Virus record (IMG/VR): IMGVR_UViG_3300044957_000763
Span: 248,001-312,000 of that record
Direction: 5' to 3' (one strand)
Length of the DNA: 64,000 nt
The notes under the pieces are model-generated. The model worked only from the letters and a program-made list of their open reading frames with translations. It was not told the origin of the DNA and did not search any database. Positions 29,674 through 64,000 of the stretch are shown piece after piece; within the stretch, counting starts at the first letter, position 1, and each line of letters starts with the position of its first letter. The position numbers were made by a program, and so were the translations under genes.

Positions 29674-30081
29674 GTGAACAACGCAGATTGGACTAGTAAG
29701 CCATCTTATAAGGAAGAAATCCTGCCTTGGCTTTGTGGACTTTTTCATGGTAGAGAACAGAAATCCAATCTTCGTGTGTCAGATGTTTGCCAAGAGTTGA
29801 TTCTTGCTCTTGATAACAGACTTATTTGCGTTTATCGTTCTTCAATGCTGAAGCGCAATGAGGTTATTGTCAAATGCACCCAACGAGGTCAAAAAATTCT
29901 TGATAGAGACACATCAAAACGGATTTCTTTCCCTCCAGAAATTGGTTGTGACGATGACTCACTCGACAAGTATTACGCTAGTGCCACTCAGGTTTTTGCT
30001 GCTGATTTGGTTCAAATGTGTACCAAATCTAGTTTTTTAGACGATATTTTGGAACAATTTTCAATACTTGAGCGAAATTAA
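29674..30081 (+). CDS. hypothetical protein with SSFLDDIL tail
   Basis: 135-aa ORF. Confidence 0.6.
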   Translation: MNNADWTSKPSYKEEILPWLCGLFHGREQKSNLRVSDVCQELILALDNRLICVYRSSMLKRNEVIVKCTQRGQKILDRDTSKRISFPPEIGCDDDSLDKYYASATQVFAADLVQMCTKSSFLDDILEQFSILERN

Positions 30082-30117
30082 GCAGTCCCTTTTGCCGCCA
30101 AATTGTAATAATAGAGT

Positions 30118-30591
30118 GTGGTAAATGGAATAGGAGCAGTTCGTCATCTGTTGATACAGCACAGAATGGCGCAATTTCAGAATATGCAAACCGTCGACCC
30201 GAGTCGCGGCGGAGTTCATATTGGCCAACAGCCTGTCGCTATTCAGGCGCAAGACCCAAACCAGCTCAATGACATTCGCAATAACTTCATGTCAAACGGA
30301 TATGCGACTCCAGTTCGACTTCAAAACGGGAAGACTGTCATTATTGCCCATGGTGCGCCTCCACAAAATGGTCAAAGATATTGGTTTATTGGCCCGTCAG
30401 CAACACAGTTTGGAAGCAATGACGGGTGGTTAAACGCAGAACAGTCCAAAGCCTGGGCCGCATCCCAGGGATATCCAGGCGCAGAGTTCATTTCATGCTA
30501 TAACCAGGGCGCATTTGACAACACAGGAAAACTTGAGATTGGAGTGCCCACAGACACTAACAGTACTGAGTTTACTGTAAAGGCGGACTAA
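30118..30591 (+). CDS. hypothetical protein (possible His/Cys dyad)
   Basis: IIAHG and FISCY motifs. Confidence 0.55.
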   Translation: MVNGIGAVRHLLIQHRMAQFQNMQTVDPSRGGVHIGQQPVAIQAQDPNQLNDIRNNFMSNGYATPVRLQNGKTVIIAHGAPPQNGQRYWFIGPSATQFGSNDGWLNAEQSKAWAASQGYPGAEFISCYNQGAFDNTGKLEIGVPTDTNSTEFTVKAD

Positions 30592-31151
30592 TGTCAAAAA
30601 ATTATGATTGGCAATTATGCCACAATCAAGGCGTTAATGACGCCAGGGTTGTCATGGGTAAGTTGAAGTCCGCTGGTCATATTCATCATTTTGAAGAAAA
30701 AAATGATGGTGTGAGCCAAAAGAAACAACGCGACTTCTTGGTGTGGTTCCAAAACGGTCTCGAGAAACCGTCACACGTTGAAGTTAAGAGTGAAAAATGG
30801 CAATTTATCAACATCGCTCTTGAGTTGATTCATGATATAGATAACAACACTCCCGGTAAACATATTAGTTTTGATAACGACTACTATCTGCACTATATGG
30901 TACCAGACAATTTAGCAGTGCGTTTTGATTGTAAACCAGTCCGGGACAATCTTCTTTTGCCACTTTTAGAAGAGAAAGACCATTTTGTGTCTGGGCAAAA
31001 AACGGCATATGAGTTTAATGGAACCAAACTCAAACTAACATATCCAAAAACATTTCGCTCGGGCACATACTCACATACGAGTTGCACGTTGATTGCACCA
31101 AAGGAATTAGTTGAAGAATACGCAGATTCGTGGCAACTCTATCAACTTTAA
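30591..31151 (+). CDS. PD-(D/E)xK nuclease-like protein
   Basis: RDFLV...HVEVKSEK...NIALE. Confidence 0.6.
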   Translation: MSKNYDWQLCHNQGVNDARVVMGKLKSAGHIHHFEEKNDGVSQKKQRDFLVWFQNGLEKPSHVEVKSEKWQFINIALELIHDIDNNTPGKHISFDNDYYLHYMVPDNLAVRFDCKPVRDNLLLPLLEEKDHFVSGQKTAYEFNGTKLKLTYPKTFRSGTYSHTSCTLIAPKELVEEYADSWQLYQL

Positions 31152-31171
31152 GCAAAATGCCATAATACGCT

Positions 31172-31582
31172 ATGGATAGTTGTACATTCACTGACGCCAA
31201 AGGTACTGTAAATTTTTTTGACAAAGATAGGGTGTCATTGCTTGCCAAAAGCATCGCTCCGGTAATAGATTATATGTGGCCTAAGGCTAAGGTCGATGAC
31301 ATTATTGAACTTAGTGACAAGGCACTATGGATGTTCTTGGAGCTATCAAATGAATATGATGTTTTGAGTCCCGCTGGAAGGTCTGATGTGTGTGAGCGCG
31401 TAGGCAAAGAACTCAATGAAGCGTATACCCACCGTTGTAAACCAAGAGTGCTTAAGAACAACAAGAAACCATCCAAGAAACAACTTGGTACGCACGAGGC
31501 GTTTTTTATTCAATATGCATCAGTTATAGCCTTTATTGTCTATGGAGACTTGAAATCAAAATACAAATTGGTGGAAGCATGA
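31172..31582 (+). CDS. hypothetical protein
   Basis: TGC-CATAAT 5 nt before ATG. Confidence 0.6.
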   Translation: MDSCTFTDAKGTVNFFDKDRVSLLAKSIAPVIDYMWPKAKVDDIIELSDKALWMFLELSNEYDVLSPAGRSDVCERVGKELNEAYTHRCKPRVLKNNKKPSKKQLGTHEAFFIQYASVIAFIVYGDLKSKYKLVEA

Positions 31583-32064
31583 CAAATACAGAATTCATAT
31601 CTCAAATCGAACAAATGGTTGCGCAACTTCCAACTGATTTGATGCGCATGAAAGAACTCCCAGAAAAACGCGGAGCTCTGTTGTATTCAGGTCCTGTACC
31701 AGATGTTTCACAATTCCACGAATGGGTTGAGAAAGCCCTGTGGATGCTTGAAAACTCAGCCGTGGCTGCAAGAAATTTGCCGGCTGGAAAGTTTGTGGCA
31801 CTTGCGTACAAGGGCGGATACGTAATTATATCTGACGACCTCAAAGATTCTTTATCAGAAGAAATGTTTAAGGCCTGTCGTGTCGTCACATATTCTGATT
31901 TTGGTCTAGAGAGAGGGTCAACGTGCTTGGTTTTCACACGTGTTCCATTTGAGCTTTCTATAGTGTTTAATGGAGATGTGTGCATGGTTTTCCTTGCGGG
32001 CAACTCTGAAGCCGACGTTGTGGTGTATTCTCCAGAACGACTGAGGCAAATTATGGTACACTAA
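31579..32064 (+). CDS. hypothetical protein
   Basis: 161-aa ORF, ATGA overlap. Confidence 0.6.
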   Translation: MTNTEFISQIEQMVAQLPTDLMRMKELPEKRGALLYSGPVPDVSQFHEWVEKALWMLENSAVAARNLPAGKFVALAYKGGYVIISDDLKDSLSEEMFKACRVVTYSDFGLERGSTCLVFTRVPFELSIVFNGDVCMVFLAGNSEADVVVYSPERLRQIMVH

Positions 32065-32068
32065 ATTT

Positions 32069-32764
32069 ATGGCTGAATATGCTAACTTTCATGAATTCCG
32101 CAGATATATGAACCAAGCAGACGTTGTTGGACTTTGTGATGCGATTACATGTCACAAGAACAAAGAACAATTGTCTAAATGGTTACAGTCTCAAATGAAC
32201 AGGAGAGTTGCGTCTGATGCGGCGTCTATGCATGGTATGGCATTTTGTAGTTTTGAGCACACTTTACAGTGTCCAATGAGCTATTTATCGGATGAGGTTC
32301 TAAAGTGTGCCGGTGTTGCAATTGAAAGAATAATAACCCGCTTAATCGCACAGAAAGATGTAGACGCAACATCATATGGAGATGCATTTACATATCAATA
32401 CGAGAATGCATATGGTCTGCACAGTTATGATTCTGATTCTATTCGGGTTGGCAACGATGAAGTTTTGGTTTCAGTAAACAGTCCGGCACCAGATGATTTT
32501 ATTGAAGGATTCAAGAATTGTTTTGCTGTGAGACACAAGCAGCACCACTCATCGCTTTTATCAGTGGTGCCCAAAGATTGTTTTGCTATTGGATTGGCTA
32601 TTTTGGCAAAAAGCAGTAAGATGATTCAAATTCATGTTGGTGTTGCGTTGAAAAATCCGATGAATGTGCGTATAATTACAAACGAGGCTAAAAGTAGTCC
32701 ATTTGACAAAATGATGGCTGTTAACACCATTATTGACAAGGCAGGTTTTCATGAGCAAATATAG
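32069..32764 (+). CDS. hypothetical protein
   Basis: 231-aa ORF; TGG-TACACT 6 nt before ATG. Confidence 0.6.
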   Translation: MAEYANFHEFRRYMNQADVVGLCDAITCHKNKEQLSKWLQSQMNRRVASDAASMHGMAFCSFEHTLQCPMSYLSDEVLKCAGVAIERIITRLIAQKDVDATSYGDAFTYQYENAYGLHSYDSDSIRVGNDEVLVSVNSPAPDDFIEGFKNCFAVRHKQHHSSLLSVVPKDCFAIGLAILAKSSKMIQIHVGVALKNPMNVRIITNEAKSSPFDKMMAVNTIIDKAGFHEQI

Positions 32765-34772
32765 AGACCCAGAAGATACACGAGATAATCATATACCAGG
32801 ACTGCCAGATAGCATGGAACAACAGCGTGTTTCAGAAGACGTTATCAAGTCTAGAGTACGTGAAATCAACGAAGTTGGTGCAAAACTTAAAACTGAATTT
32901 GCTGGCATTGACAAGCAGATTGACACCATCATTCGCTATGTAACCCCTTTTTACGCGACGCCAGAATTGCTCACAAGACCCATAGTAGTGTGCCTGTGGG
33001 GCATGACTGGCGTAGGTAAGACACACGTTCTTCGTCGTTTGGCCAATTTAACCAACATGCAATCTCGATACGCCACATTCGATATGGGGGAATATTCTGG
33101 TGGATTCTCGGAATATACACTCAGGTATCAGCTTGACGATGTGGCAGACACTGTTGAAGACGGTAGGGCAATGATTGTGTTTGATGAAATGCAAACCATT
33201 AGGTTCATTGACGAAACAGGAAGCGAAGTCGACCGCCCGGCTGCAAGATTGATTTGGGACGTGCTGGATGGTGCACCGATGACTCGAAATACGTCTTTTA
33301 ACAATGATGTACTCGAGATGGTTAAAGACTTCAAGCGACTGCGACGACTCGGTGTAACTATTGAGAAGAACACGGTTGTATCTGGCACAAATCATTTCAA
33401 GAAAATCCGCCGACGATGGTCTAGAGAAGATTCAGAAGACACATTTACTGCTATAAATTCTGATGATTTTGAAACGATGTACAGGGCTAATCCTGTGCAC
33501 TTCAATTACAACGAAGACTATGAAGCATGGTTAAAGGTTTTTGAAGAATTCAAAGACATCAACGATTTCATTTCTTATATCCAGTTGGTTAGTGATGGGT
33601 ACAAACTTGGTGAACCAAACAACCTGTCTCGTAGTTTGATTTTCTGCGTTGGCAATCTTGATGAGGTATATCATGAAAGCCACGATATCAGCCCTGATAT
33701 TGACATTGAAAGCCTGCGAGAATACACTGAGAAAGTCACGCTTTCTCAGGTGAAAACCGCACTATTAGACAGATTCAGACCAGAACAGATTGCAAGACTT
33801 GGCAACAACCATGTTATCTATCCAAGCCTTGACAGAAATAGTTACTGGAAAATCATTAGAAAACACATAAGCAACTCGCTTGCCAGGGTCAAATCGGCAT
33901 ACAATGTTGACTTGAACGTGGACGAAAGCGTGGCTGAACTTATTTTCAAAGAGAGCGTATTTCCAACTCAGGGCGCAAGACCGGTAAATAACTCATTCAG
34001 CATGTTGTTTGACTCATATCTTGCCGATGCATTGTGCCAATTACCAGCCACTGGACCAATTGATTGGAAATATGATGCTACCAATCGAAAATACCAGTTC
34101 TCTCGTGGTGAAAGCACGTATTCGGTTGATGTTCAACTTATGGTTGAGTCGCAACGCGATAATGAAGAAAATGACAAGCAGGCAATTATAGCTGTTCACG
34201 AGGCAGGCCATGGACTCGCTGCCGCGCTCTATACTGGCAGATGGCCAAAGGAACTTCGCTCTCGCACTGCTGGAACAGAGGGCGGATATACGACGTTTGA
34301 ACCGCTTCAGTTCAAAACTCGCAATGACATTCTTGGAATAATTAAACAAGGCATGGCTGGCATTGTAGCTGAGGAAGTAATTTATGGAGTCGATAACATC
34401 AGCAATGGTTCCGGAGAAGACTTTTCGATGATTACTAAAGAAATCCAACAAGCAGTTGCCGCACTTGGGCTCTTCAGAGAGTCTTGGATTGGCACAAGCA
34501 ATTCACATGTTGGCCTTCTTTCAGATTCGCAAAGCATGAAGAAAGTGTCTCAAATCGTTATTGACTTGATTAAAGAATCACACAGCACGATGGTTGAGGA
34601 CTTTATTCAGCACAAAGAACTAATTTTGCGAATTGCAGAATACTTGATATCCCATACTGTCATGCCGGGGGTCATGTTTGCCGAGATGTGCGAAAAGCAC
34701 GGGGTGAAATTGCCAACTAGATTTAGTCACAGAGAATCACTACTGCAGTCATTAAAAGAAATCAATAGTTAA
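32751..34772 (+). CDS. soluble AAA+ ATPase fused to an M41 (FtsH-type) zinc protease domain
   Basis: GMTGVGKT, IVFDE, FRPEQIARLG, GARP; HEAGH, AEEV, GSGED; no TM segment. Confidence 0.85.
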   Translation: MSKYRDPEDTRDNHIPGLPDSMEQQRVSEDVIKSRVREINEVGAKLKTEFAGIDKQIDTIIRYVTPFYATPELLTRPIVVCLWGMTGVGKTHVLRRLANLTNMQSRYATFDMGEYSGGFSEYTLRYQLDDVADTVEDGRAMIVFDEMQTIRFIDETGSEVDRPAARLIWDVLDGAPMTRNTSFNNDVLEMVKDFKRLRRLGVTIEKNTVVSGTNHFKKIRRRWSREDSEDTFTAINSDDFETMYRANPVHFNYNEDYEAWLKVFEEFKDINDFISYIQLVSDGYKLGEPNNLSRSLIFCVGNLDEVYHESHDISPDIDIESLREYTEKVTLSQVKTALLDRFRPEQIARLGNNHVIYPSLDRNSYWKIIRKHISNSLARVKSAYNVDLNVDESVAELIFKESVFPTQGARPVNNSFSMLFDSYLADALCQLPATGPIDWKYDATNRKYQFSRGESTYSVDVQLMVESQRDNEENDKQAIIAVHEAGHGLAAALYTGRWPKELRSRTAGTEGGYTTFEPLQFKTRNDILGIIKQGMAGIVAEEVIYGVDNISNGSGEDFSMITKEIQQAVAALGLFRESWIGTSNSHVGLLSDSQSMKKVSQIVIDLIKESHSTMVEDFIQHKELILRIAEYLISHTVMPGVMFAEMCEKHGVKLPTRFSHRESLLQSLKEINS

Positions 34773-34776
34773 TACA

Positions 34777-35385
34777 ATGATTATCAACGTACTTCCACCA
34801 GAAAAAATACGCGATGAGTTTGGTTGGGCTAGCATCGAGTGGTGGCAGTATATGTTTTGCACTGTTCAGCGTGTGGATTACATTTACGAACCATTCATGA
34901 CTATAAATGTTGATAGCTTTGATTCTCTTCGGAATGCTTTGCACGCCATAGAAGAAGAAGCACTGATGTACATGGTCAACGAAACAGCCAGAGGCAAGTC
35001 CGCTGAAATCAAAGACTTGATTCCCGATAACGACCTTGTGATTATCAGCAAACACACCGACATATCATTGGTCAACCAGTTATATGCCCCTAGTGTACTT
35101 CAGTGTTGGCACAGGATGTTCGAGCACGAAGGTGATTTGTACGATGACACCGACCTGGTTTTACGCCACGGCATGGTCTTAGATGATAAGATACCAATAG
35201 CCGTCAAAATTGATAATTTGCCTGGTGAGTGCGAACTCGGAAACATGGGTTCTGCTGTTATCTCTGCGGTCATTGTTGAATCAGACGCGAGCAAACTCAA
35301 TTTTGAAACGCACACAATACACAGACTAAAGCCAGACAATGACAAAAAAGCCTCCACACTTGACATACTTTTGGGGATGCAATGA
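34777..35385 (+). CDS. hypothetical protein with KKASTLDILLG tail
   Basis: 202-aa ORF. Confidence 0.65.
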   Translation: MIINVLPPEKIRDEFGWASIEWWQYMFCTVQRVDYIYEPFMTINVDSFDSLRNALHAIEEEALMYMVNETARGKSAEIKDLIPDNDLVIISKHTDISLVNQLYAPSVLQCWHRMFEHEGDLYDDTDLVLRHGMVLDDKIPIAVKIDNLPGECELGNMGSAVISAVIVESDASKLNFETHTIHRLKPDNDKKASTLDILLGMQ

Positions 35386-35529: not shown

Positions 35530-35955
35530 GTGATTAAAATGTCAATTGATAAAGACATAGAAGCATACGTTTTAACCGAACTCAAAACTCGGAATACTAT
35601 TTACGAACCTACAGTTGGTGACGTAATGTGTTTTTACACGCCACACGGTGTTTATGGCCCGGTTCCATACGAGTCTAATGCGTATTATTCTACATTCTCT
35701 ACCCAAGAAAAGATAGTAAATTCAAATGCAAAGGCGTCCGCCGAAGCGTGCATAGTCAAAATTCAAGAAAAAATCAACATCGCCAAACAAGAAGTTGCCT
35801 CGGCAGCAAACAACGAATTGAGCTTTGTACACGTAAGGTTTTATGGACTCAGGACTCGGATTTGCCGGTCATTTGTATTAGTTTCCGCCGATGTTTGTGT
35901 GGCATGTTCGTACAAGCATATTGGTTTTTTAGATGCACTGTTTGACTTTGGTTAA
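35530..35955 (+). CDS. hypothetical protein with GFLDALFDFG tail
   Basis: 141-aa ORF. Confidence 0.6.
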   Translation: MIKMSIDKDIEAYVLTELKTRNTIYEPTVGDVMCFYTPHGVYGPVPYESNAYYSTFSTQEKIVNSNAKASAEACIVKIQEKINIAKQEVASAANNELSFVHVRFYGLRTRICRSFVLVSADVCVACSYKHIGFLDALFDFG

Positions 35956-36673: not shown

Positions 36674-37931
36674 ACAAAAAAGGCAGGAATATGTAAATAG
36701 AATATATAAGTAATTCTATGTGCTGAAGGCTTTTAAGTACAGAATATATCCGAACCAGAAACAGGTTGAAATGTTCAACGAACATTTCGGAGCAACACGA
36801 TTCGTCTATAACTGGGGATTGGAAAAGAAAACGAAAGCCTATCAACAAGAGTCGAAGACTTTATCGTGTTTTGAGTTAACTAATCGACTGAAGCAACTCA
36901 AAGAAGAGCAGCCTTGGTTGAAGGCTGTGAATAGCCAATCACTCCAGATGGCATTGCGTCATTTAGACAGTGCTTACACTAGGTTCTTTCGAGAGAAGAA
37001 AGGATTTCCCAAGTTCAAATCAAAACACAATCCAAAACAATCATTTCAGTGTCCTCAGAATTCATCTGTTGACTGGAATAGTGAAACGCTCTCTATTCCG
37101 AAAATCAAGGGGATTAAAGCCAGGCTCCATCGAAAATTCGATGGAGAAATCAAAACTGTCACAATAAGCAAGAATTGTGTTGGACATTATTATGCATCAA
37201 TTCTTGTTGAGACAACAGAATTGATGCCGCAAAAGACGGTTCTGGACATTGACAATGCCGTAGGCATAGATGTTGGCATTAGTAGATTCCTAACCACTTC
37301 AGATGGAATGATTGTTGAGAATCGAAAGTTCTTCAAAAAGTCAGAGAAGAGACTGGCTTATGAACAGTATCGACTTAGTAAGATGAAGAAAGGCTCTGCT
37401 AACAGAACTAAACAAAAGAAAAGAATTGCCCGTATTCACGAGCATGTATCCAATCAAAGACGAGATTTTCTGCACAAAGTGACGAGAAAACTAGTTGACG
37501 AGAATCAAGCGACTACGTTTTGCATCGAAGACCTTTCAATTAAGAACATGCAGAAGAATCACTGTCTTGCCAAATCCATCGCAGACGCATCTTGGGGTAT
37601 GTTCTTTGAACTCCTGAAGTACAAATGTGATTGGTCAGGAAAGAATCTTCTTGATATCGGAAGATTTGAACCAAGTAGCAAGATGTGCAGTGCATGTGGT
37701 GCTGTAAACAGAGAACTAAAGCTATCTGATAGAACATGGACATGCGCCTGTGGCGCATGTCATGACAGAGATAAAAATGCCGCCGAGAACATTCGTAGAA
37801 TGGCTTTTCAGCGTCAGAACTTAATTAGATGTATAGGGCTGGAACAGCCCGAATCAACGCCTTTGGACACTGTAGCAATAGCTACGTGAATGAAAAAGGA
37901 AGTCGCACACTTTATGCGTGCGGCAGTTCAC
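36674..37931 (+). mobile_element. tnpB-only IS200/IS605-type element
   Basis: right end hairpin CGCAC..GTGCG then GGCAGTTCAC; left junction inferred from promoter restoration. Confidence 0.65.
36720..37889 (+). CDS. tnpB: TnpB RNA-guided endonuclease
   Basis: KAFKYRIYP, GIDVG, IEDL, SSKMCSACG, CACG..HDRDKNAA. Confidence 0.95.
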   Translation: MLKAFKYRIYPNQKQVEMFNEHFGATRFVYNWGLEKKTKAYQQESKTLSCFELTNRLKQLKEEQPWLKAVNSQSLQMALRHLDSAYTRFFREKKGFPKFKSKHNPKQSFQCPQNSSVDWNSETLSIPKIKGIKARLHRKFDGEIKTVTISKNCVGHYYASILVETTELMPQKTVLDIDNAVGIDVGISRFLTTSDGMIVENRKFFKKSEKRLAYEQYRLSKMKKGSANRTKQKKRIARIHEHVSNQRRDFLHKVTRKLVDENQATTFCIEDLSIKNMQKNHCLAKSIADASWGMFFELLKYKCDWSGKNLLDIGRFEPSSKMCSACGAVNRELKLSDRTWTCACGACHDRDKNAAENIRRMAFQRQNLIRCIGLEQPESTPLDTVAIAT

Positions 37932-37950: not shown

Positions 37951-39027
37951 ATGTCTGAGAAAAGTGAACAACCAGGCTGGATGGTCAACAAAAAATACGG
38001 ACATGTTTCCGATATTACATGGCATCAGTTGCCAGATGACGATGACCACATTTACGTTAACCATTTCAAAAAAATTCGTGGTTTAACAGCCGCCCCTAAA
38101 AAAATTGCCAAAAACCCATCCGAGCCTCACGAAAATGAAGAGGCATGGGTGTTCACAGATGAAACTACAATGAACGATTGGTTGCGCGATGACGCCGCAC
38201 TATTGTCAAGAAAGTTGCAAAATTATCTGGAGAAACTTTCTAGCATAGACTCGCGTGCAAACTTTATGATAAGCTCAATATGGCCAGATAATTTCATTTT
38301 AGGATATGTGCCAAAAGACTATAGGGATTATTCAAGGGTGTATTTATCAGCCCGAAAAATTTGTGAATACAGCGTGGATTCAGTGGTGAAATACACTGAA
38401 AAACAACTTGGGATGCCACTTTGTGAATTCAATCGTGTGTGGAATAAAATGGAATACGCTCAATACAACAACGAGTTGAGCATTGTGCTTGCGATAAGTT
38501 CCCAAGAACAAATAGATTACTTCAATAAACACTCACCAAATGAATCTGTTGTTGTAGACAAAATTGCATTTGTTATGAAGGCTATGTGCCCAGAATTGAA
38601 GTACAACCTTACGGTTCGTCGTACTCCAAGATATTTGTTTGGCGACGACAAGCATCTTGTAAGCCTGGCTACAGACTTTGATACCGAGTTTTACAAAGTA
38701 CTGGGCAACAACATTAAAACCAAGCTCAGCAACGCAGTGCGGCGACCACTATTACACAGTGCAAATATTTCTGCCTATCTTGTGGGTCGAGATATGCTTG
38801 GAAAAGTTCCATCCCATGTACTTCAACGCTCAATAATATTGCCATATACCTATGCTTCTGCTAAATGCTACACAGTATATGCGCCCATCAACATTAATGT
38901 TTGGGCAAGACCAGATAATACGATAATTGTTGATACCAACCTGGCCACCGGTTCCGCAGAGTTGACCAGATTCAATAATACACTTTCATCAAGCAATATT
39001 CTAGACCAGTTATTGGAGATGTCCTAA
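37951..39027 (+). CDS. hypothetical protein with SNILDQLL tail
   Basis: 358-aa ORF. Confidence 0.7.
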   Translation: MSEKSEQPGWMVNKKYGHVSDITWHQLPDDDDHIYVNHFKKIRGLTAAPKKIAKNPSEPHENEEAWVFTDETTMNDWLRDDAALLSRKLQNYLEKLSSIDSRANFMISSIWPDNFILGYVPKDYRDYSRVYLSARKICEYSVDSVVKYTEKQLGMPLCEFNRVWNKMEYAQYNNELSIVLAISSQEQIDYFNKHSPNESVVVDKIAFVMKAMCPELKYNLTVRRTPRYLFGDDKHLVSLATDFDTEFYKVLGNNIKTKLSNAVRRPLLHSANISAYLVGRDMLGKVPSHVLQRSIILPYTYASAKCYTVYAPININVWARPDNTIIVDTNLATGSAELTRFNNTLSSSNILDQLLEMS

Positions 39028-39524
39028 TGACACACAAAGAACTGGTGATGAGGGCGGCCAAGTGGCTCACCAACACGCGCAAGTGCTCCGTGGTTGTTAC
39101 TGAATTTGTGACATCTGGAATTACGGAAAGTCCAGATGCACTTGGATGGAAAAATGCCAGGAATACGATTTTGATTGAGTGCAAAACCAGTAAAACAGAT
39201 TTCAACAGAGACCATGACAAGCCTTTCCGTAGATTTTGGGAGTTTGGTCTTGGCCAAGTCAGATATTATCTTACTCCACCAGACTTGATTACAGTTGAGG
39301 ACTTGCCAGACGGGTGGGGGTTGTTGTATTGTCATGCCAACAGGATTCAAATAGTTCACGAACCCAATAAAAAAGCCACCAGCAAAGATGTGGCGTGGAA
39401 CGAAAATGCCATACTGTATTCACTAGTCAGAAGGGCGGTAATCAGGGGGTTTGACATTCATTCTCCATATAGTGAGGCTCCAAAAGCAGGTAGAAAACGT
39501 CGTAAAAGGAGAAAGTCTAAATAG
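39027..39524 (+). CDS. PD-(D/E)xK nuclease-like protein
   Basis: ESPDALGW..ILIECKTSKTDF..D..KP. Confidence 0.7.
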   Translation: MTHKELVMRAAKWLTNTRKCSVVVTEFVTSGITESPDALGWKNARNTILIECKTSKTDFNRDHDKPFRRFWEFGLGQVRYYLTPPDLITVEDLPDGWGLLYCHANRIQIVHEPNKKATSKDVAWNENAILYSLVRRAVIRGFDIHSPYSEAPKAGRKRRKRRKSK

Positions 39525-39567: not shown

Positions 39568-39840
39568 ATGGAAGTGCACCTTAAAAAGCCACATCTCATC
39601 GTTCTCTGCCAAGCATTTGATGGCGATAGCATTCTATCGCCAGATATCACTCATTTTTACTGGAGGCGCCGGCAAACGAAATTGAAACCTGGAGACTTCG
39701 CAATTTTGTTTGAAACGGGTCTAATGGAGTGGATTGACGGATTGGACTTTGGCCAATCTTCAAGCGAGGGAGTCATTACACCAGCCGGGAAAGAACTGGT
39801 TGAAGAACTTGGATTGTGCACGTATGCATACTCCAAATGA
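39568..39840 (+). CDS. hypothetical protein
   Basis: 90-aa ORF. Confidence 0.5.
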   Translation: MEVHLKKPHLIVLCQAFDGDSILSPDITHFYWRRRQTKLKPGDFAILFETGLMEWIDGLDFGQSSSEGVITPAGKELVEELGLCTYAYSK

Positions 39841-39875
39841 GTATGCAATGCGCAAAGATATGGTATCATACCATC

Positions 39876-40190
39876 ATGAAACACACAGCGCATGTTTTGA
39901 ACGACGAGGGTGATATTGTTTTAACATGGGACCCAAAGATTCGTGAAGACCGAGAAAACATGAAGCAAATATTTGCGACATTCATCGAACAGGGTTATGA
40001 AGCGTATGCAGTCAGTGAAAAGCCATCCAAACTAGATGCAATGCTTGGTGTCGAGTACGTAAAAACCAAGCAAGTGTTTGACCTTGATGCAACTATTGGC
40101 AAGCTGATTATGCGCAAGAAGGTGGTAATCGCTCCTGCCACTGTTCATGGCGGATACCCCAAGTCAGGAATGAATCAAGGACGCCTATAA
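39876..40190 (+). CDS. small conserved phage protein with near-terminal GG
   Basis: GDIVLTWD...GYEAY...PATVHGG; TGG-TATCAT 6 nt before ATG. Confidence 0.65.
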   Translation: MKHTAHVLNDEGDIVLTWDPKIREDRENMKQIFATFIEQGYEAYAVSEKPSKLDAMLGVEYVKTKQVFDLDATIGKLIMRKKVVIAPATVHGGYPKSGMNQGRL

Positions 40191-43481: not shown

Positions 43482-43482
43482 C

Positions 43483-50907: not shown

Positions 50908-52052
50908 GCAAACTTCCAAAGAACAAGACTACTGTGTGGTTGACTAACTACTCAGCAGGAACCATTGAAGAGAAAATATTAGTCAAGAGAAAGTCTGGAG
51001 TATATAGCATTCAGCATACAGATATTATCTTAGACCACACACTCACACCAAGCATCGAGCAATCTATTGCAGAACAAAACACTGACGAACATGTATACTC
51101 ATGGGGTGTAAAATTAAACACCACGCTGTCTATTGCGTCTAGTCTTGACTGGGCATTGTGGTGTTTAGAATCTGAAAAGTCAAATAATGAAAAGCGGCTT
51201 GAAACGATAAATCAAATCCTGCAAACCTATAACATTGGGGACTCGTCATTATTGCACAATATGCAACCATTTGTGCATGCACAACTTGTGCGACTGAATA
51301 GCGATGACACTAGTGGTTTTGTAGAGGTGTATTACAAGTCAAATTGGAGCAGCGCTATGCATCAATCAATGGGGCGCAATGCTAACTTGTTGTTGCACCA
51401 GGGTCTTGGTGTGAAAGAAGGCCGACTAAGCCAAGAAAACATGTATGTGCGAATCGGTCGGTATGGTGTTGGGTTCTACATTACTGATGATTTGTTTAAC
51501 GAACTTGTTCACGAATCGCAAAGTTTAATTGACCAAGCAGAAACAGTAAAACAATTACAGGCAATGTGGGGCAATCACCAATATGGATTCAGTATTGAAT
51601 TCCAACAGAGTCCGCCGCACCCATATATGGCATACAAGAATCACTGGTGTCATTTTGAAGAGGGCGATTATGAACGAGCGCAAAAAATAATTTCAAAACA
51701 ATTGCCTACGGCTTTGTCGGTTGCAGCACGGTCTAACTTAAAAACAAAATCCAAAGCCCCGGTTGTGCAATTCGCACTGTCTCGTTCCGCAGCCGAACGC
51801 GAAGGTGTGAATAGTGAAACTGATGGACATTGTTTGATTGAATACTCCGCAAAGGCCGATTTGCGCAAAAACACATACTATGGAATGAGTAAACCACTAA
51901 CAGGATTGTGCTTTGGGCGCACAGATGGCACTGTTAGCTTGTATATTCAAGGAGACCCAAATCACGTGCACAAGTTGACCGCAGAGGCTTATAGACAATT
52001 GATGCGCAAATCTACTAGCGTTCTTGACGCACTTATTGAGGCAGACCAATGA
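50904..52052 (+). CDS. hypothetical protein with TSVLDALI tail
   Basis: 382-aa ORF. Confidence 0.7.
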   Translation: MSKLPKNKTTVWLTNYSAGTIEEKILVKRKSGVYSIQHTDIILDHTLTPSIEQSIAEQNTDEHVYSWGVKLNTTLSIASSLDWALWCLESEKSNNEKRLETINQILQTYNIGDSSLLHNMQPFVHAQLVRLNSDDTSGFVEVYYKSNWSSAMHQSMGRNANLLLHQGLGVKEGRLSQENMYVRIGRYGVGFYITDDLFNELVHESQSLIDQAETVKQLQAMWGNHQYGFSIEFQQSPPHPYMAYKNHWCHFEEGDYERAQKIISKQLPTALSVAARSNLKTKSKAPVVQFALSRSAAEREGVNSETDGHCLIEYSAKADLRKNTYYGMSKPLTGLCFGRTDGTVSLYIQGDPNHVHKLTAEAYRQLMRKSTSVLDALIEADQ

Positions 52053-58394: not shown

Positions 58395-58625
58395 TTGTGT
58401 GGTAGCTTAAGGTTTCAATGTAGCAGCATGGCGCCAGATTCGTGCGTTATCTGCGCACAGTGCCATATGGTTTGGGAGATTAACGACAATGGTGAACTTG
58501 AAACCTGCCAATACCAATTTGACAACCAGCGCAAACAAGAAATTATTGACTCACTAGATGGTGTCAATTGTGCTTATGCGCCTAAGAAAAAATTACTGTC
58601 GATACTTGACATGATGCTAGAATAA
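58395..58625 (+). CDS. small Cys-rich protein with LSILDMML tail
   Basis: 76-aa ORF. Confidence 0.55.
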   Translation: MCGSLRFQCSSMAPDSCVICAQCHMVWEINDNGELETCQYQFDNQRKQEIIDSLDGVNCAYAPKKKLLSILDMMLE

Positions 58626-59402: not shown

Positions 59403-59420
59403 ATCTGCTATACTTGAATC

Positions 59421-59837
59421 GTGTTTACATTCAAGTTCAAAGTAAACGAAGACAGGTCTGTGAAAATTTACGGACTTGAAACAGGAGCAGTGAAAGAACT
59501 CGCCGGCGCAGGACAAACATGGCGCATGTGGTCAGTGTCAGGACATGGCTATCAATCCGGCCGAGAATGGAAATATGGCCAGAGTAGCATCTGGATTGTT
59601 CAAGTGGATGGCGACAATATGCTTGCTGACATTGGGTTTGAACTCGGTCACAAATGGAAGGCTGGTCGCAAAATCATCGCACAAATCGTTGAACAACTCA
59701 ACCAAAACCCCGGAGCCAACCACCTGCCATATTTGATAGAACTGTCGAAAAAAGTCCGTGACTGGCATTGCGAACAACAAGAACTAACACCAATCCAAAG
59801 ACTGGAAAAAGCCATAAAAACAATCAAAAATGAATAA
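59421..59837 (+). CDS. hypothetical protein
   Basis: TGC-TATACT 6 nt before GTG. Confidence 0.65.
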   Translation: MFTFKFKVNEDRSVKIYGLETGAVKELAGAGQTWRMWSVSGHGYQSGREWKYGQSSIWIVQVDGDNMLADIGFELGHKWKAGRKIIAQIVEQLNQNPGANHLPYLIELSKKVRDWHCEQQELTPIQRLEKAIKTIKNE

Positions 59838-60093
59838 ATTGATATGCCACTGCAAATGCTATCTATTCTTTAGTGTCGAAGATGGAACAATTGTGGTGTG
59901 TAACAAATGTTTTTCACAATGGAAATGGCATGTCGGACAAAGACTTGTAGAAGTGCATTCAAGCGAAACAGATAGACTTTTTCTATCTGAAAAAAGACCA
60001 CCAACAACAACGCTCAAAGAGTATTACGCCAAAGACATCCAACCACTATCGGCGCAAAAAACATCGCTGCTTGACACGCTCTTCATGCTATAA
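59830..60093 (+). CDS. small Cys protein with TSLLDTLF tail
   Basis: 87-aa ORF. Confidence 0.6.
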   Translation: MNKLICHCKCYLFFSVEDGTIVVCNKCFSQWKWHVGQRLVEVHSSETDRLFLSEKRPPTTTLKEYYAKDIQPLSAQKTSLLDTLFML

Positions 60094-60100
60094 TAACAGC

Positions 60101-60322
60101 GTGAAAGCAAAATGCAAATGCACTAAGTTCTTCGACGGACCTTACCGAGATGAACAATGGCTAGTTGTGTGTATTAAATGCTTCACATTGTATCAGCTTA
60201 ATCCACAAACAGCGAAGCTGACACTAATTCAACCGCAACTCACTGAAAAAGAGCGCGTTGAATATGCTATTTGGGCGCAACAAGGCAAGAAAGCCAAGTC
60301 ATATCAAACTACAAGTGAATAG
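60101..60322 (+). CDS. small Cys protein
   Basis: TGC-TATAAT 6 nt before GTG. Confidence 0.55.
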   Translation: MKAKCKCTKFFDGPYRDEQWLVVCIKCFTLYQLNPQTAKLTLIQPQLTEKERVEYAIWAQQGKKAKSYQTTSE

Positions 60323-60324
60323 CG

Positions 60325-60621
60325 ATGAACAATAGATTCAATCAAACAGTGACGAACACACAACTTGAAACCTCAAAATCACTCATTAACATAATCGCAG
60401 AATTAGACTTATTAGTGCCAGTCGACGGAACGTGCATCGAGTGCGCAACAGGCAAGTATAGATTCCAATTCCATATGTCTGTAGTGGAAAAGTACGCAGG
60501 ACAAATTAGAGAACTTATGAGCGAATCACCGTGCTACTGCGGCGGCTACCTGTGGCTGGTGAGTATACCACCAAAACCCAACAAACTCGACAATATGATT
60601 GAGGAAAAAACACCATGTTAG
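60325..60621 (+). CDS. small Cys protein with PNKLDNMI tail
   Basis: 98-aa ORF. Confidence 0.55.
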   Translation: MNNRFNQTVTNTQLETSKSLINIIAELDLLVPVDGTCIECATGKYRFQFHMSVVEKYAGQIRELMSESPCYCGGYLWLVSIPPKPNKLDNMIEEKTPC

Positions 60622-60848
60622 ACAATCAGTGGAAACCAATAACAACAGCACCTAAAGACGGCAGCAGAATACTAGGAACCTCAAATAGCACACAAGTACA
60701 CTGCTACTATTTCCATCAAACAGATAAACAATGGTGGATTGATTACGCAGATGGACCAAGCTGGCAACCAACACACTGGATGAATGTGCCCGAATACTGC
60801 GAAACACCAAAAATCAGCTTGCTCGATGCAATATTCATGGTGGAATAA
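60615..60848 (+). CDS. DUF551-like small protein with SLLDAIF tail
   Basis: WKPITTAPKDG...PTHWM. Confidence 0.7.
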   Translation: MLDNQWKPITTAPKDGSRILGTSNSTQVHCYYFHQTDKQWWIDYADGPSWQPTHWMNVPEYCETPKISLLDAIFMVE

Positions 60849-60850
60849 CG

Positions 60851-61299
60851 TTGAGAACTACAGAAAAAACAATTATGTATGACGCATATCACGCATACCA
60901 ATATGCACTGGATGTAATCAAAGACCGATGGCTGGAGGCCGAACCTATCATAATGAAGGATGCTGAATACGCATACTTATACGCAAAAGAAGTAATCAAA
61001 GGACGATGGCCGGTAGCAGAACCAACTATCCAGCAGGATGCTGAATTTGCATACTACTACGCACAGAGAATCATCAAAGGACGCTTTCTGGCAGCCGAAC
61101 AAACCATCCTGCAGAATGCTGAATACATGCAACAATACACTGACCATTTCTTCCCATACACAAAAGTTGTCACAAAGAGAAAAATTAATGATGATTGGCT
61201 ATGGGAAAAAAGCGGCGCAATAGGATGCTTTGCACCAGAAGAATGTTCAAAATTAAAATCAGCATTCTAGATGCTATACTAGAAACAGAAGTATGTTGA
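60851..61299 (+). pseudogene. 26-aa-repeat protein, unit 1 (3 repeats), frameshifted near 61243
   Basis: one A missing relative to unit 2; correction restores ...ISILDAILETEVC*. Confidence 0.75.
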
Positions 61300-62048
61300 C
61301 AATTACAAAAGACACTACACCAAAAGAAGCATACTTATACGCAAAAGACGTCATCAAAGGACGTTGGCCGGAGGCCGAATCAATCATCCAGCAGGATGTA
61401 AAATACACATACTTATATGCACGATACCTAATCCCAGGACGTTGGCTGGAAGCCGAACCTATTATCCTGCAGGATGCTGAATATGCATGCTTGTACGCAG
61501 AATACGTCATCAAAGGTCGTTGGCCGGAGGCCGAACCAACCATCCTGCAGGATGCTGAAGAAGCATTCTACTACGCACGTAACGTCATCAAAGGACGTTG
61601 GCCAGAGGCCGAACAAACTATTCAGCAGAATGCATATTACGCATACTGCTACGCACGAGACGTAATCAAAGGTCGCTGGCCGGAGGCCGAACCAATCATC
61701 CAGCAGGATGCACAATACGCATACGAATACGCACGAGACGTAATCAAAGGTCGCTGGCCGGAGGTCGAACCTATTATCCTGCAGGATGCTGAATATGCAT
61801 GCTTGTACGCAGAATACGTAATCCAAGACCGTTGGCCGGAGGCCGAACCAACCATCCTGCAGAATGCTGAATACATGCGTCAATACATCGCCCATTTCTT
61901 CCCATACACAAAAGTTGTTACAAAAGAACAAATTAATGATGATTGGCTATGGAAAAAAAGCGGCGCAATAGGATGCTTCGCACCAGAAGAAATGTTCAAA
62001 ACAAAAACCAGCCTGCTAGATGCTATACTAGAAACAGAAGTATGTTGA
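61293..62048 (+). CDS. 26-aa-repeat protein, unit 2 (7 repeats)
   Basis: YAxxYAxxVIKGRWPEAEPxIxQDA repeats. Confidence 0.85.
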   Translation: MLTITKDTTPKEAYLYAKDVIKGRWPEAESIIQQDVKYTYLYARYLIPGRWLEAEPIILQDAEYACLYAEYVIKGRWPEAEPTILQDAEEAFYYARNVIKGRWPEAEQTIQQNAYYAYCYARDVIKGRWPEAEPIIQQDAQYAYEYARDVIKGRWPEVEPIILQDAEYACLYAEYVIQDRWPEAEPTILQNAEYMRQYIAHFFPYTKVVTKEQINDDWLWKKSGAIGCFAPEEMFKTKTSLLDAILETEVC

Positions 62049-62485
62049 CAATTACAAAAGACACTACACCAGAAGAAGCATACGCACACGCACTTAACGT
62101 AATCCAAGACCGCTGGCCGGAGGCCGAACCAATCATCCAACAAAACAGGGAGTATGCATACTACTACGCAAACGGCGTCATCAAAGGACGTTGGCCGGAA
62201 GCCGAACCAACTATCATGCAGAATTCAAAATACGCATTGTGTTACGCAACAGACGTAATCCAAGACCGTTGGCCGGAGGCCGAAGCAACCATCCAACAGG
62301 ATGCATATTATGCGCGGCACTACACTGAACATTTCTTCCCAGGAATAAAAGTTGTTACAAAACAACAAATTAACAATAATTGGTTATGGGAGAAAAATGG
62401 CGCAATAGGATTTTTTGCACCAAAAGAACTCTTCAAACCAACAACCAGCATTCTAGATACTATACTAGAAACAGAAGTATGTTGA
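62042..62485 (+). CDS. 26-aa-repeat protein, unit 3 (3 repeats)
   Basis: real start ATG 62042, overlapping the previous stop (ATGTTGA). Confidence 0.85.
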   Translation: MLTITKDTTPEEAYAHALNVIQDRWPEAEPIIQQNREYAYYYANGVIKGRWPEAEPTIMQNSKYALCYATDVIQDRWPEAEATIQQDAYYARHYTEHFFPGIKVVTKQQINNNWLWEKNGAIGFFAPKELFKPTTSILDTILETEVC

Positions 62486-63714
62486 CAATTACAGAAAACA
62501 CCACACCAAAAGAAGCATACTGCTACGCACGAGACGTCATCAAAGGACGCTGGCCAGAGGCCGAATACATCATCCAGCAGGATGTACAACACGCATACTT
62601 CTACGCACTTAACGTCATCAAAGGACGCTTTCTGGAAGCCGAACCAACTATCCAGCAGAATGCACAATACGCATACGAATACGCACGAGACGTAATCAAA
62701 GGCCGCTGGGAAGAAGCTGAACCAGCCATCCAGCAGTGTAACGAGTGTGCATGCGCCTACGCACACGATGTAATCCAAGCCCGCTTCTTAGCGGCCGAAC
62801 CAACTATTCAACAGTCTGCATATTACGCATACGAATACGCAAAAGACGTAATCAAAGACCGCTGGCCAGAAGCAGAACCAGCCATTCTGAAAAGTGCAAA
62901 ATATGCATACTTATACGCATATGAAATCCTTGAAAACCGCTGGCCGGAGGCCGAATCAATCATCCAGCAGGATGCTGAATATGCATGTTGTTACGCACGC
63001 AACCTAATCGAAGACCGATGGTTAGAAGCCGAACCAACCATCCAGCAGGATGCAAAAGAAGCATACTTATACGCATTTAACATCATCAAAAACCGTTGGC
63101 CGGAGGCCGAATCAACCATCCAGCAGGATGCAAAATACGCATGCTTATACGCAGAATACCTAATCCAAGACCGTTGGCCGGAGGCCGAACCTATCATCCA
63201 GCAGAATGCAAAATGCGCATACAAATATGCACTGAACGTAATCCAAGACCGATGGCCGGAGGCCGAACCAATCATCCAACAAAACAGGGAGTATGCATAC
63301 TACTACGCAAACGACGTCATCAAAGGACGTTGGCCGGAGGCCGAACACATCATTCAGCAGAATTCAAAATACGCATACTACTATGCACGAGACGTAATAC
63401 AAGACCGATGGCTGGAGGCCGAACCGACCATCCGAAAGAATGCATTTTACGCATACTGCTACGCACGAGACGTAATCAAAGACCGCTTCCTAGCAGCCGA
63501 ACTAACTATCCAGCAGAGCGCCGAATACACGCAACAATACACTGACTGCTTCTTCTCAGGAACAAAAGTTGTTACAAAACAACAAATTAACGATGATTGG
63601 CTATGGGAGAAAAAGGGCGCAATAGGATTTTTTGCACCAGAAGAAATGTTCAAAACAAAAACCAGCATTCTAGATGCTATACTCCAAGAAAGTCCGCAAT
63701 GGGCCAACATATAA
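62479..63714 (+). CDS. 26-aa-repeat protein, unit 4 (13 repeats)
   Basis: real start ATG 62479 with the same overlap. Confidence 0.85.
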   Translation: MLTITENTTPKEAYCYARDVIKGRWPEAEYIIQQDVQHAYFYALNVIKGRFLEAEPTIQQNAQYAYEYARDVIKGRWEEAEPAIQQCNECACAYAHDVIQARFLAAEPTIQQSAYYAYEYAKDVIKDRWPEAEPAILKSAKYAYLYAYEILENRWPEAESIIQQDAEYACCYARNLIEDRWLEAEPTIQQDAKEAYLYAFNIIKNRWPEAESTIQQDAKYACLYAEYLIQDRWPEAEPIIQQNAKCAYKYALNVIQDRWPEAEPIIQQNREYAYYYANDVIKGRWPEAEHIIQQNSKYAYYYARDVIQDRWLEAEPTIRKNAFYAYCYARDVIKDRFLAAELTIQQSAEYTQQYTDCFFSGTKVVTKQQINDDWLWEKKGAIGFFAPEEMFKTKTSILDAILQESPQWANI

Positions 63715-64000
63715 CCCTACCAAATACCAAACAACATACTCGATACAATAAACAGGTGAAGAAATGAGCGGAAATGCACTGCCAGAAGACTACGAAGAAC
63801 TATGGAGACAAGAAGAACTCAAATCAAAGAACAAGAAGGAAATCAAATGCGTGTGCGTCTGTGGAAGAGAAAGAATACTGGAAGTGGATAAAGACAACGA
63901 AGACCTGACACAAATCACAAATTACCCGTGCAAGTGCGGACTGTTTATGTGCGTGGTGGGAACAAAACCAGGACTCCATACACCAATAGACTTAATGTGG

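Follow-up and report, generated by a model that had tools for sequence, protein, structure and literature searches.

The window analyzed here comprises 64,000 nucleotides of a 478,840-bp contig from a lake-water phage (IMGVR_UViG_3300044957_000763, positions 248,001 to 312,000), and carries, in a stretch of 34 kb, at least thirteen genes for otherwise unrelated small proteins that end in, or close to, the same short L-D-containing peptide. The carrier genes, together with a soluble AAA+/peptidase M41 protease encoded among them, are collected in the table below. The initial annotation had put forward such a tail on about a dozen mostly unrelated proteins, and this observation is confirmed: every tail it listed is present in its gene, as are the six different codon pairs by which it found L-D to be encoded. 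A few corrections apply. The motif lies near the C-terminus and not always at it, with 1-11 residues following it, the gene listed at 17500 most likely starts at 17536, and the four repeat genes have the boundaries given in the table, successive units overlapping in ATGTTGA, which serves as the stop of one unit and the start of the next. The tail of repeat unit 1 (U1), which the initial annotation could read only after frameshift repair, is out of frame because of a 1-nt deletion (GAAG-AATG against GAAGAAATG in the paralogs), as follows from an alignment of the four unit ends. Contigs from three independent lake-water runs span this site with no difference, and it is therefore not a one-off assembly error.

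Features of the window (positions in the 64,000-nt stretch; all on the + strand)
Position	Feature	Gene	Motif or sequence
17977..18003	Weak variant with Lys before L-D, 166-aa protein, 11 residues after the motif	17536-18036	PVNKLDAIVAE
29471..29481	Extended -10 promoter-like site, 5 nt before the ATG at 29487, heading the operon that carries the protease and the first three carriers		
30028..30054	Tail of the 135-aa protein, 9 residues after the motif	29674-30081	TKSSFLDDILE
32733..34772	Soluble AAA+/peptidase M41 protease (679 aa), same operon as carriers 29674, 34777 and 35530; candidate hub under the degron reading	32733-34772	GMTGVGKT, IVFDE, HEAGH
35350..35376	Tail of the 202-aa protein	34777-35385	DKKASTLDILLGMQ
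35920..35946	Tail of the 141-aa protein	35530-35955	HIGFLDALFDFG
38992..39018	Tail of the 358-aa protein	37951-39027	SSSNILDQLLEMS
40023..40049	Internal variant in the 124-aa protein	39816-40190	KPSKLDAMLG
52014..52040	Tail of the 382-aa protein	50904-52052	KSTSVLDALIEADQ
58596..58622	Tail of the 76-aa Cys-rich protein	58395-58625	KKLLSILDMMLE
60061..60087	Tail of the 87-aa Cys-rich protein	59830-60093	QKTSLLDTLFML
60577..60603	Weak variant in the 98-aa protein	60325-60621	KPNKLDNMIEE
60813..60839	Tail of the 77-aa protein	60615-60848	PKISLLDAIFMVE
61241..61291	Out-of-frame copy of the tail after repeat gene U1, frame shifted by a 1-nt deletion upstream	60851-61270	
62007..62033	Tail of repeat protein U2	61293-62048	KTKTSLLDAILETEVC
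62444..62470	Tail of repeat protein U3	62042-62485	KPTTSILDTILETEVC
63661..63687	Tail of repeat protein U4 (411 aa)	62479-63714	KTKTSILDAILQES...

None of the carriers has a recognizable DNA-related domain or fold. The 87-aa Cys-rich protein shows a weak hit to Phage_zn_bind_2 (E=0.078), the body of the 77-aa protein hits phrog_924, a family of unknown function, and the body of U2 is made of 26-aa repeats with sub-threshold matches to T4 Frd.3 (Pfam PF05798). The window thus carries T4-type accessory genes, namely gp30.3 (E=4.5e-52), an RNA ligase and the Frd.3-like repeats, which speaks for the T4-type clamp reading considered below.

To assess whether the tail exceeds what chance would give, the expression LD.[ILMF][ILFVM] was matched to the 110 ORFs of the window. 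This returned 18 hits in 20,664 residues, 12 of them, in 12 ORFs, within 11 residues of the end (all in the last 16 residues), against 0.42 expected from the internal rate (binomial P=4e-14), while shuffled proteins gave a mean of 0.40 and a maximum of 4. Repeat unit 3, a thirteenth case, was left out of this count by the gene prediction. In 80 unrelated viral loci 13 of 2,031 ORFs carry the motif (odds ratio 19, P=5.5e-10). As the expression was written after seeing the data, the independent checks are the conservation in orthologs described below and an unbiased scan of all 400 dipeptides over the last 16 residues, in which LD is the most enriched (19 against 6.75 expected, P=8e-5). Alignment of 14 window tails gives the consensus K-x-K-x-[S/N]-h-L-D-a-[ILM]-[LFI]-[E/G], with S or N at -2 in 13 of 14, L-D invariant, I/L/M at +3, L/F/I/V at +4, E or G at +5 in 9 of 14 and K at -4 in 8 of 14, which reads as a basic, Ser/Thr-containing linker followed by an N-capped amphipathic helix.

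Five carrier families have orthologs in four related phage contigs, at 45-62% identity, and all keep the tail through many synonymous changes, the tail usually being the best-conserved stretch (identity 0.71-1.00 against 0.51-0.62 for the body in four of the five families). Orthologs of the 135-aa protein end ...SVLDVIFDQI (related contig L004) and ...SVLDDILDHF... (related contig L094), those of the 141-aa protein carry G[FM]LD[AT][LW][FL]D[FL]G, and the ortholog of the 382-aa protein, at 57% identity, ends KPTSVLDALFEA. Four orthologs of the 202-aa protein keep DKKAS[TM][LI]D[IM]LL[GA]MQ although the protein body is only 51% identical; in this family 8 of 13 tail codons differ with a single L-to-I replacement, with 7 synonymous codon changes against L004. 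In six homologs of the 358-aa protein, at 45-62% identity, S346, S347, N349, I350, L351, D352, Q353, L354, L355 and M357 are invariant, whereas the linker before them varies. AlphaFold2 (AF2) gives pLDDT below 50 for residues 343-358 of this protein, in line with predicted disorder, and places a short helix on residues 195-198 of the 202-aa protein, at low confidence. The internal variant in the 124-aa protein is kept in two orthologs, but the whole protein is conserved, and this copy is therefore not informative on its own. These data bear on the possibility that the pattern is no protein feature at all but chance, common descent of gene ends, or a translated DNA or RNA signal such as a ribosome-binding site, coupling signal or terminator. 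In some genes the Glu or Gly codon after the motif does overlap the Shine-Dalgarno or start of the next gene, as in GGAGATGTCCTAATG at 39013-39027, and the four repeat genes do share their ends by descent. However, outside the repeat family the tails use different codons and share no DNA similarity, the carrier bodies are unrelated, and orthologs keep the peptide through synonymous changes, so that with the enrichment given above this reading is highly improbable and, for the core L-D-x-h-h, is already refuted.

We next considered the protease, as the initial annotation had proposed that the tail might be a degron for it. The enzyme matches Pfam M41 (E=2.9e-13) and ClpB_D2-small, its Walker A, Walker B and HEAGH motifs are intact and invariant in four orthologs at 77-79% identity, a higher conservation than that of the carriers, and the family is widespread, with 792 cluster representatives at E<=1e-30. 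It does lie in the same operon as three or four carriers, just upstream of the gene for the 358-aa protein. In this reading the tag, or adaptor-binding tag, would give a set of early accessory proteins a programmed short life, and the disordered, terminal nature of a tail found on unrelated proteins, the clustering of carriers around the protease and the host-type promoter-like sites that precede the carrier genes, fitting early proteins that must later be removed, all agree with it. On the other hand, half of the carriers (50.9-63.7 kb) lie 16-29 kb from the protease in other operons, the variable distance of the motif to the terminus and its one internal copy imply that a free carboxylate is not part of it, and an invariant L-D with a helix cap looks like pocket docking rather than pore engagement. 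Co-expressing a protease with its substrates in one operon would also be odd, though not impossible. Tag and protease co-occur in three close relatives (L004, L094 and a third contig, L093), whereas in two distant phages, where protease homologs at about 33% identity sit beside gp32, PolB or ligase genes, 0 of 22 and 2 of 31 neighbors carry the motif, far fewer than here, as counted in 20-kb neighborhoods only. Established C-terminal degrons of AAA+ proteases, such as the ssrA tag for ClpXP/FtsH and the lambda CII tail for FtsH, are likewise disordered and portable, but depend on the free C-terminus or are only loosely hydrophobic, and no phage-encoded tag-plus-protease pair of this kind is known to us. 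We regard the degron reading as unlikely.

The tail closely matches clamp-binding ends that we read from the T4-like phages themselves. T4 gp43 ends ...EEKASLDFLFG, gp55 ...SPSLDFLYEAND (SPSLDFLYE) and gp33 ...TNTLDFLL (NC_000866), RB69 gp43 ends ...EKKASLFDMFDF (NC_004928), to be compared with the window tail DKKASTLDILLG, and the ends of seven other T4-like gp43 polymerases include TLESFFG, NLSAFFG, SIDAFFG, TLEFLFG and NLLSMMG. Both sets comprise a short hydrophobic-acidic, helix-forming peptide on a flexible linker, at or near the C-terminus of non-homologous proteins, with a core [S/T]..L-D-x-h-h followed by G, E or D and a K-K-A-S-type lead-in. The T4 ligase loop EGLDFLFD binds gp45 as an amphipathic helix (PMC6212786), and the three T4 tails are reported to be interchangeable (PMC2988020). 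When the same expression was matched to 102 kb of T4 it found gp43, gp55, gp33 and gp32, plus one small ORF and one unannotated ORF, and in a known system it therefore marks hub-binding tails. The register differs, however, in that Ser is at -2 with a hydrophobic residue at -1, where T4 has Ser at -1, and Leu and Ile replace the aromatic residues. Here, moreover, at least 13 carriers lie in 34 kb, none a recognizable replication or transcription protein, against one clear tail (a 127-aa gene) and one dubious I-D case (a 117-aa gene) in the other 87 kb read, a clustering that a clamp does not predict. No clamp, RFC-like clamp loader or DNA polymerase was found in the window by Pfam searches of about 80 proteins and by tblastn with nine T4 proteins, among them gp43, gp44, gp45, gp62 and gp55, nor in a further 57 kb or so of flanking sequence, these together making up the roughly 121 kb of the contig that was read, about 75% of it lying outside. 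A profile search with gp45 listed no protein from a 478-kb contig among the best 120 of 450 hits. The ligase-like gene, the Rv2179c-like exonuclease, the RNA ligase, the HNH genes and TnpB in the region read lack the motif, and no T4 late promoter TATAAATA occurs in the window.

Taken together, the interpretation offered by the initial annotation, that many accessory proteins dock on one phage hub or carry a degron, is partly supported: the core of many clients and one hub is its best-supported part, selection on the protein and the likeness to the T4/RB69 peptide hold, and neither the clamp nor the degron is shown. Our data demonstrate C-terminal enrichment, purifying selection at the protein level, conservation across four related phages, predicted disorder and clustering of the carrier genes in operons that follow host-type promoter-like sites. 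What follows from here is inference. The tail is most likely a modular short linear motif, a Lys- and Ser/Thr-rich flexible linker followed by an N-capped (S/N-h-L-D) amphipathic helix of about two turns with four hydrophobic side chains, at -1, 0, +3 and +4, on one face, which would have been grafted onto at least thirteen non-homologous accessory proteins of this phage lineage and would tether all of them to a hydrophobic groove on one common partner. The carriers thus probably all dock on one partner, which could not be identified here, and our best guess, held tentatively at a probability of about 0.4, is the phage's own gp45/PCNA-type sliding clamp, which the tail would bind as the C-termini of T4 gp43, gp33 and gp55 and the T4 ligase loop do, the clamp then serving as a tool-belt that brings these accessory proteins to phage DNA.

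Docking on some other single hub is more doubtful than the clamp, yet less so than a degron. Such a hub might be a host protein (RNA polymerase, a chaperone, a division or replication protein) or a phage structure (capsid interior or ejection apparatus, a cytoskeletal or compartment protein), and docking could co-localize or co-package the accessory proteins. All evidence for a common docking motif applies equally here, as does the absence of a clamp from the sequence searched; the carriers are small proteins of unknown function, Cys-rich or repeat-built, typical of host take-over genes, C-terminal cargo peptides on unrelated proteins are known from encapsulins, and the L-x-x-[LI]-[LF] helix face is a generic groove-binding design. 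Against it, no candidate hub is identified, and the peptide matches none of four motifs known to us, namely bacterial beta-clamp QL[SD]LF, SSB DDDIPF, FtsZ DIPxFL and encapsulin GSL. Encapsulin cargo-loading peptides and the T4 capsid-targeting sequence are also short terminal peptides shared by unrelated cargo that dock on an HK97-fold shell or scaffold, but the former are GSL-type and the latter is N-terminal and cleaved; no capsid or shell gene lies in the 121 kb read, and the promoter-like sites preceding the carriers, being host-type rather than late-type, argue against virion loading. A membrane-targeting helix, like the C-terminal helices of MinD or FtsA, would fit basic residues before a short amphipathic C-terminal helix, but is very unlikely, as an invariant Asp and a frequent Glu lie inside and after the hydrophobic face, the helix is only about 7 residues long, and sequence constraint is far tighter than membrane binding needs.

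PIP-box/PCNA and bacterial beta-clamp-binding motifs likewise have one ring-shaped hub with many clients, each carrying a short terminal peptide that fits a hydrophobic pocket. In the present tails, however, there is no Gln and no aromatic pair, the hydrophobic spacing i, i+1, i+4, i+5 does not fit QL[SD]LF or QLxLxL, and the beta-clamp motif binds in an extended form, not as a helix (PMC6212786). Finally, the core L-D-x-L-L amphipathic helix is formally identical to that of eukaryotic LD motifs (paxillin LDxLLxxL) and LxxLL boxes, which bind helical-bundle grooves in eukaryotic adaptor systems, a likeness of convergent design only that implies no membership.

The initial annotation held that about a dozen mostly unrelated proteins of this phage share a short C-terminal L-D peptide, and in our analysis that observation stands. 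We picked 110 non-overlapping ORFs, in which the pattern LD.[ILMF][ILFVM] occurs 18 times, with 12 of these occurrences lying within 11 residues of the C-terminus. The internal rate predicts 0.42 C-terminal hits, giving a binomial P of 4e-14, and shuffled proteins give a mean of 0.40 and never more than 4. A search with the TnpB gene found a single copy on the contig, and the 80 unrelated viral loci that it returned served as the background control: 13 of 2,031 ORFs in these loci carry the motif, corresponding to an odds ratio of 19 (P=5.5e-10). Because the pattern was written after the data had been seen, we also performed a blind scan of all 400 dipeptides, in which LD is the most enriched in the last 16 residues (19 against 6.75 expected, P=8e-5). 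Repeat unit 3 was lost to the overlap filter applied in ORF picking, and with this unit included there are 11 strong tails, plus two variants with Lys before L-D, one internal copy and one out-of-frame copy. Aligned on L-D, the consensus comprises K at −4 in 8 of 14, S or N at −2 in 13 of 14, a hydrophobic residue at −1 in 10 of 14, an invariant L-D, Ala at +2 in 7 of 14, I/L/M at +3, L/F/I/V at +4, and E or G at +5 in 9 of 14. S/N-x-x-D is the classical helix N-capping box and hydrophobic residues at i, i+1, i+4 and i+5 form one helical face, from which we infer, on established helix rules, that the tail is a capped amphipathic helix on a basic linker.

The tail is a protein feature under selection. 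Outside the repeat family the tails use different codons and share no DNA repeat. Homologues of the 358-aa carrier exist in five other metagenomic sequences at 45–62% identity, and in all of these S-S-x-N-I-L-D-Q-L-L-x-M is invariant while the dozen residues before it vary. Three syntenic contigs of related phages (L004, L094 and L093) carry orthologues of the carrier families, the 202-, 141- and 358-aa proteins in all three and the 135-aa protein in L004 and L094, and every orthologue has its tail. The 382-aa family has one orthologue, at 57% identity, which ends KPTSVLDALFEA. The 202-aa protein is only about 51% identical across orthologues, yet it keeps DKKAS[TM][LI]D[IM]LL[GA]MQ, and against L004 8 of its 13 tail codons differ, with 7 of those changes being synonymous. 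Tail identity exceeds body identity in four of the five families. AlphaFold2 models the 358-aa protein at pLDDT 73.5 but gives the last 16 residues less than 50. The FRD3-like repeat protein of another phage (locus L091) lacks the tail, which is thus an add-on of this lineage. We considered whether the tail could be a prohead-protease cleavage site ([L/I]-x-E) and rejected this, since several orthologues end in G, D or nothing, and removing 0–9 residues has no evident purpose. Literature searches found no description of such a shared tail in large phages.

The window (positions 248,001–312,000) belongs to the 478,840-bp viral contig IMGVR_UViG_3300044957_000763, of which a near-identical 478,786-bp counterpart exists in a sister JGI sample, and the same DNA stands in several lake-water metagenome runs. 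Its GC content is 43.7%. Megablast and tblastn of window segments and of two proteins against GenBank phages found no close relative, with only the gp30.3 homologue matching (best to Vibrio phages at 62–66% identity), and scans of IMG/VR with carrier proteins and with the protease returned only the source contig. Genes with recognizable functions in the window include ArgRS, a HisRS-like protein, an RNA ligase, two TnpB genes, a T4 gp30.3 homologue (E=4.5e-52), NMNAT, NUDIX, an ABC transporter, a ZIP transporter, an ion channel, a SpoU methylase, an M24 peptidase and a soluble AAA+/M41 protease, of which the membrane and transport genes are unusual for a phage. Features observed alongside the tails are collected in the table below.

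Features of the window and its flanks, with window positions unless a flanking locus (L number) is named
Feature	Position	Strand	Remarks
Extended −10 promoter-like boxes (examples)	1759, 3756, 4665, 10661, 14584, 17518	−	
Extended −10 promoter-like boxes (examples)	1993, 17521, 21162, 29471, 35961, 41761, 43808, 47005, 52207	+	
AAA+/M41 protease	32733–34772	+	679 aa
Block of five unknown genes	30118–32764		Conserved; precedes the protease
Four tandem repeat paralogues	60851–63714	+	Loose end in run X2 at 63675
TnpB (IS605 OrfB)	36720–37889	+	Between the HTH gene and the 358-aa carrier
Second, divergent TnpB	6360–7538	−	
NAD+ salvage set (NUDIX, NMN adenylyltransferase-like protein, NAPRTase)	271–750 (−), 17990–18646 (+); L097 18344–19516		
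ArgRS	15822–17501		
HisRS-like protein	12004–12804		
RNA ligase	9723–10436		
gp30.3 homologue	25926–26390		
ZIP metal transporter, voltage-gated-type ion channel, OmpA-domain protein of 627 aa, ABC transporter permease-like protein with its ATPase	9037–9735 (−), 11199–12011 (−), 22394–25923 (+)		
165-aa protein	39027–39524	+	Downstream of the 358-aa carrier; ends ...KAGRKRRKRRKSK
127-aa protein with tail	L112 924–1307		Left of the window; ends ...RKSSLLDMIVEPHS
117-aa protein	L087 11621–11974	−	Left of the window; ends ...CPNRAIDALFDIDPSVP
Two WGR-domain proteins, one fused to an ATP-dependent ligase-like nucleotidyltransferase domain, followed by a MoxR/CbbQ-type AAA+ ATPase with a CobT-like partner	L113 14168–15265 and 17110–18258; L193 14795–17979		Right of the window, contig about 325–340 kb

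Thirteen tails lie between window positions 29.7 and 63.7 kb, and one weak variant lies at 18 kb. Walking outward through overlapping and related loci, we reached about 57 kb more of the same genome, covering 218,959 to ~340,000 of the contig, which yielded one further clear tail to the left, that of the 127-aa protein, and none in roughly 29 kb and about 50 ORFs to the right. A related 117-kb contig returned by a metagenome scan is syntenic with the MoxR region and has no tails. The 117-aa protein ending ...NRAIDALFDIDPSVP was considered as an I-D variant on an exonuclease-like protein, but it shows no similarity to the neighboring exonuclease and its CPNRAIDALF stretch aligns weakly (E=0.1) with CPNRALDPLF of the NotI N-terminal region, so that it may be part of a domain and not a tail, and we dropped it. 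The carriers lie in operons headed by an extended −10 motif, TGTGnTAnAAT, which is strongly enriched: TGTGCTATAAT with up to 1 mismatch occurs at 16 sites against 1.5 expected. At 15 or more places the box ([T/C]GTGnTAnA[A/C]T) sits 4–6 nt before the ATG of a real ORF of 61–559 aa, ArgRS and an HTH regulator among them, leaving no room for a Shine–Dalgarno sequence, which suggests host-RNA-polymerase promoters and translation of the first genes of operons from leaderless mRNAs. The T4 late-promoter box TATAAATA is absent from the window.

To compare the tails with clamp-binding peptides, as the initial annotation had done, we read the reference tails from the sequence records themselves. T4 gp43 ends ...EEKASLDFLFG, gp55 ...SPSLDFLYEAND and gp33 ...TNTLDFLL, while RB69 gp43 ends ...EKKASLFDMFDF. 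Of seven other gp43 homologues, six end ...TLESFFG, ...NLSAFFG, ...SIDAFFG, ...TLEFLFG, ...NLLSMMGKKG and ...DLSSIFDI, and one has a Lys-rich end without the motif. The family consensus is a basic residue, then S, T or N, then [L/I]-[D/E/S]-x-h-h-G, and the window tails fit this, the best example being DKKASTLDILLG against RB69 EKKASLFDMFDF. Two differences remain: Ser is one position further from L-D, and Leu/Ile replace Phe. The T4 ligase loop EGLDFLFD binds gp45 as an amphipathic helix with a Kd near 10 μM (PMC6212786), and the three T4 tails are reported to be interchangeable (PMC2988020). As a positive control, the pattern (with Tyr allowed) was run over 102 kb of T4 comprising 190 ORFs, where it finds gp43, gp55, gp33 and the gp32 acidic tail, plus MobD.4 and one unannotated ORF. 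In a well-understood phage the pattern therefore marks hub-binding tails, and it is about four times rarer there than in this window.

Against the clamp, or leaving it open, there is no clamp, loader, polymerase or other replisome gene in the window or in the flanks that we read, together about a quarter of the contig. A gp45 profile (T4 plus a Vibrio schizoT4 phage) run against the protein collection gave no hit on a 478-kb contig among its best 120 of 450 hits, a partial result that is not informative. The WGR-ligase-like gene to the right has no motif, terminal or internal, and the exonuclease, RNA ligase, HNH genes and TnpB also lack it. Only some groups of jumbo phages encode a PCNA-type clamp (PMC7824862), so that its presence here cannot be assumed. 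No carrier has a recognizable fold or family: Pfam and PHROG scans of all carriers gave no function, the model of the 358-aa protein has no match in PDB or BFVD, and that of the 202-aa protein was too poor to use (pLDDT 36). Structure-atlas look-ups of the 382-aa and 231-aa proteins gave nothing above chance, and β-clamp rows at TM 0.24–0.25 for the 382-aa protein were rejected as noise.

The alternative that the tail is a degron rests on the 679-aa protease, which combines a Clp-like AAA+ module (ClpB_D2-small hit) with an M41 metallopeptidase and lacks the FtsH membrane anchor. Its motifs are intact, GMTGVGKT, IVFDE and HEAGH are invariant in four orthologues, and the gene shares an operon with three carriers and precedes a fourth. 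Its family is large, with 792 cluster representatives at E<=1e-30, nearly all unnamed metagenomic proteins. In two distant phages it sits beside gp32, an SbcCD-like protein and an NAD ligase, or near a family B polymerase, and there 0 of 22 and 2 of 31 neighbors carry the motif in the 20-kb neighborhoods that could be read, which is weak evidence that the tag and the protease are not an obligate pair.

The interpretation offered by the initial annotation, one hub being either a clamp or another receptor, or a degron for the protease, is thus supported only in part: a common docking peptide on many unrelated proteins is well supported (probability about 0.8), whereas its partner is not identified. 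We place the clamp first, tentatively (about 0.4), another hub second as a doubtful possibility, and the protease degron third as unlikely. The C-terminal enrichment, the conservation in related phages and the selection at the protein level come from the analysis itself, while the helix, the binding to any partner and the identity of that partner are inferred from sequence and by analogy. A further reading, which we consider unlikely but which the data leave room for, is that a huge phage runs a tag-and-hub system of its own, in which one portable C-terminal peptide, added to more than a dozen unrelated early accessory proteins, would hand them to a phage-encoded machine. That machine could be the AAA+/M41 protease, giving programmed turnover of take-over proteins, or a sliding clamp whose tool-belt has grown far beyond replication and transcription factors. 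Short linear motifs that wire many proteins to one hub are central to eukaryotic and bacterial replication but have hardly been charted in phages. Here a single peptide would mark thirteen or more proteins of unknown function as clients of one partner, the finding of which would give all of them a first functional handle. If the partner is the clamp, this phage uses it as a general recruitment platform on a scale not seen in T4, and if it is the neighboring protease, this would be a phage-encoded degron system. The peptide, for instance as KTKTSLLDAILE, is also a ready-made affinity handle, and a search key for further clients in the rest of this 479-kb genome and in its relatives.

The basic run that ends the 165-aa protein is conserved in relatives and is a second, different kind of C-terminal tail in the same operon as the 358-aa carrier. 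The four tandem paralogues are built of 26-aa repeats (about AEYAYxYAxxVIKGRWPEAEPxIxQD) with sub-threshold matches to T4 Frd.3, and each stop overlaps the next start in ATGTTGA. Unit 1 has a 1-nt deletion that cuts off its tail, a sequence reproduced by contigs of three independent runs (X1, X2 and X4), and the loose end in run X2 points to a strain variant with a further unit. The TnpB gene next to the 358-aa carrier is absent at this place in the three related contigs, so it is a recent insertion, and its closest relatives (74–78% identity) lie in other viral contigs of 378–441 kb.
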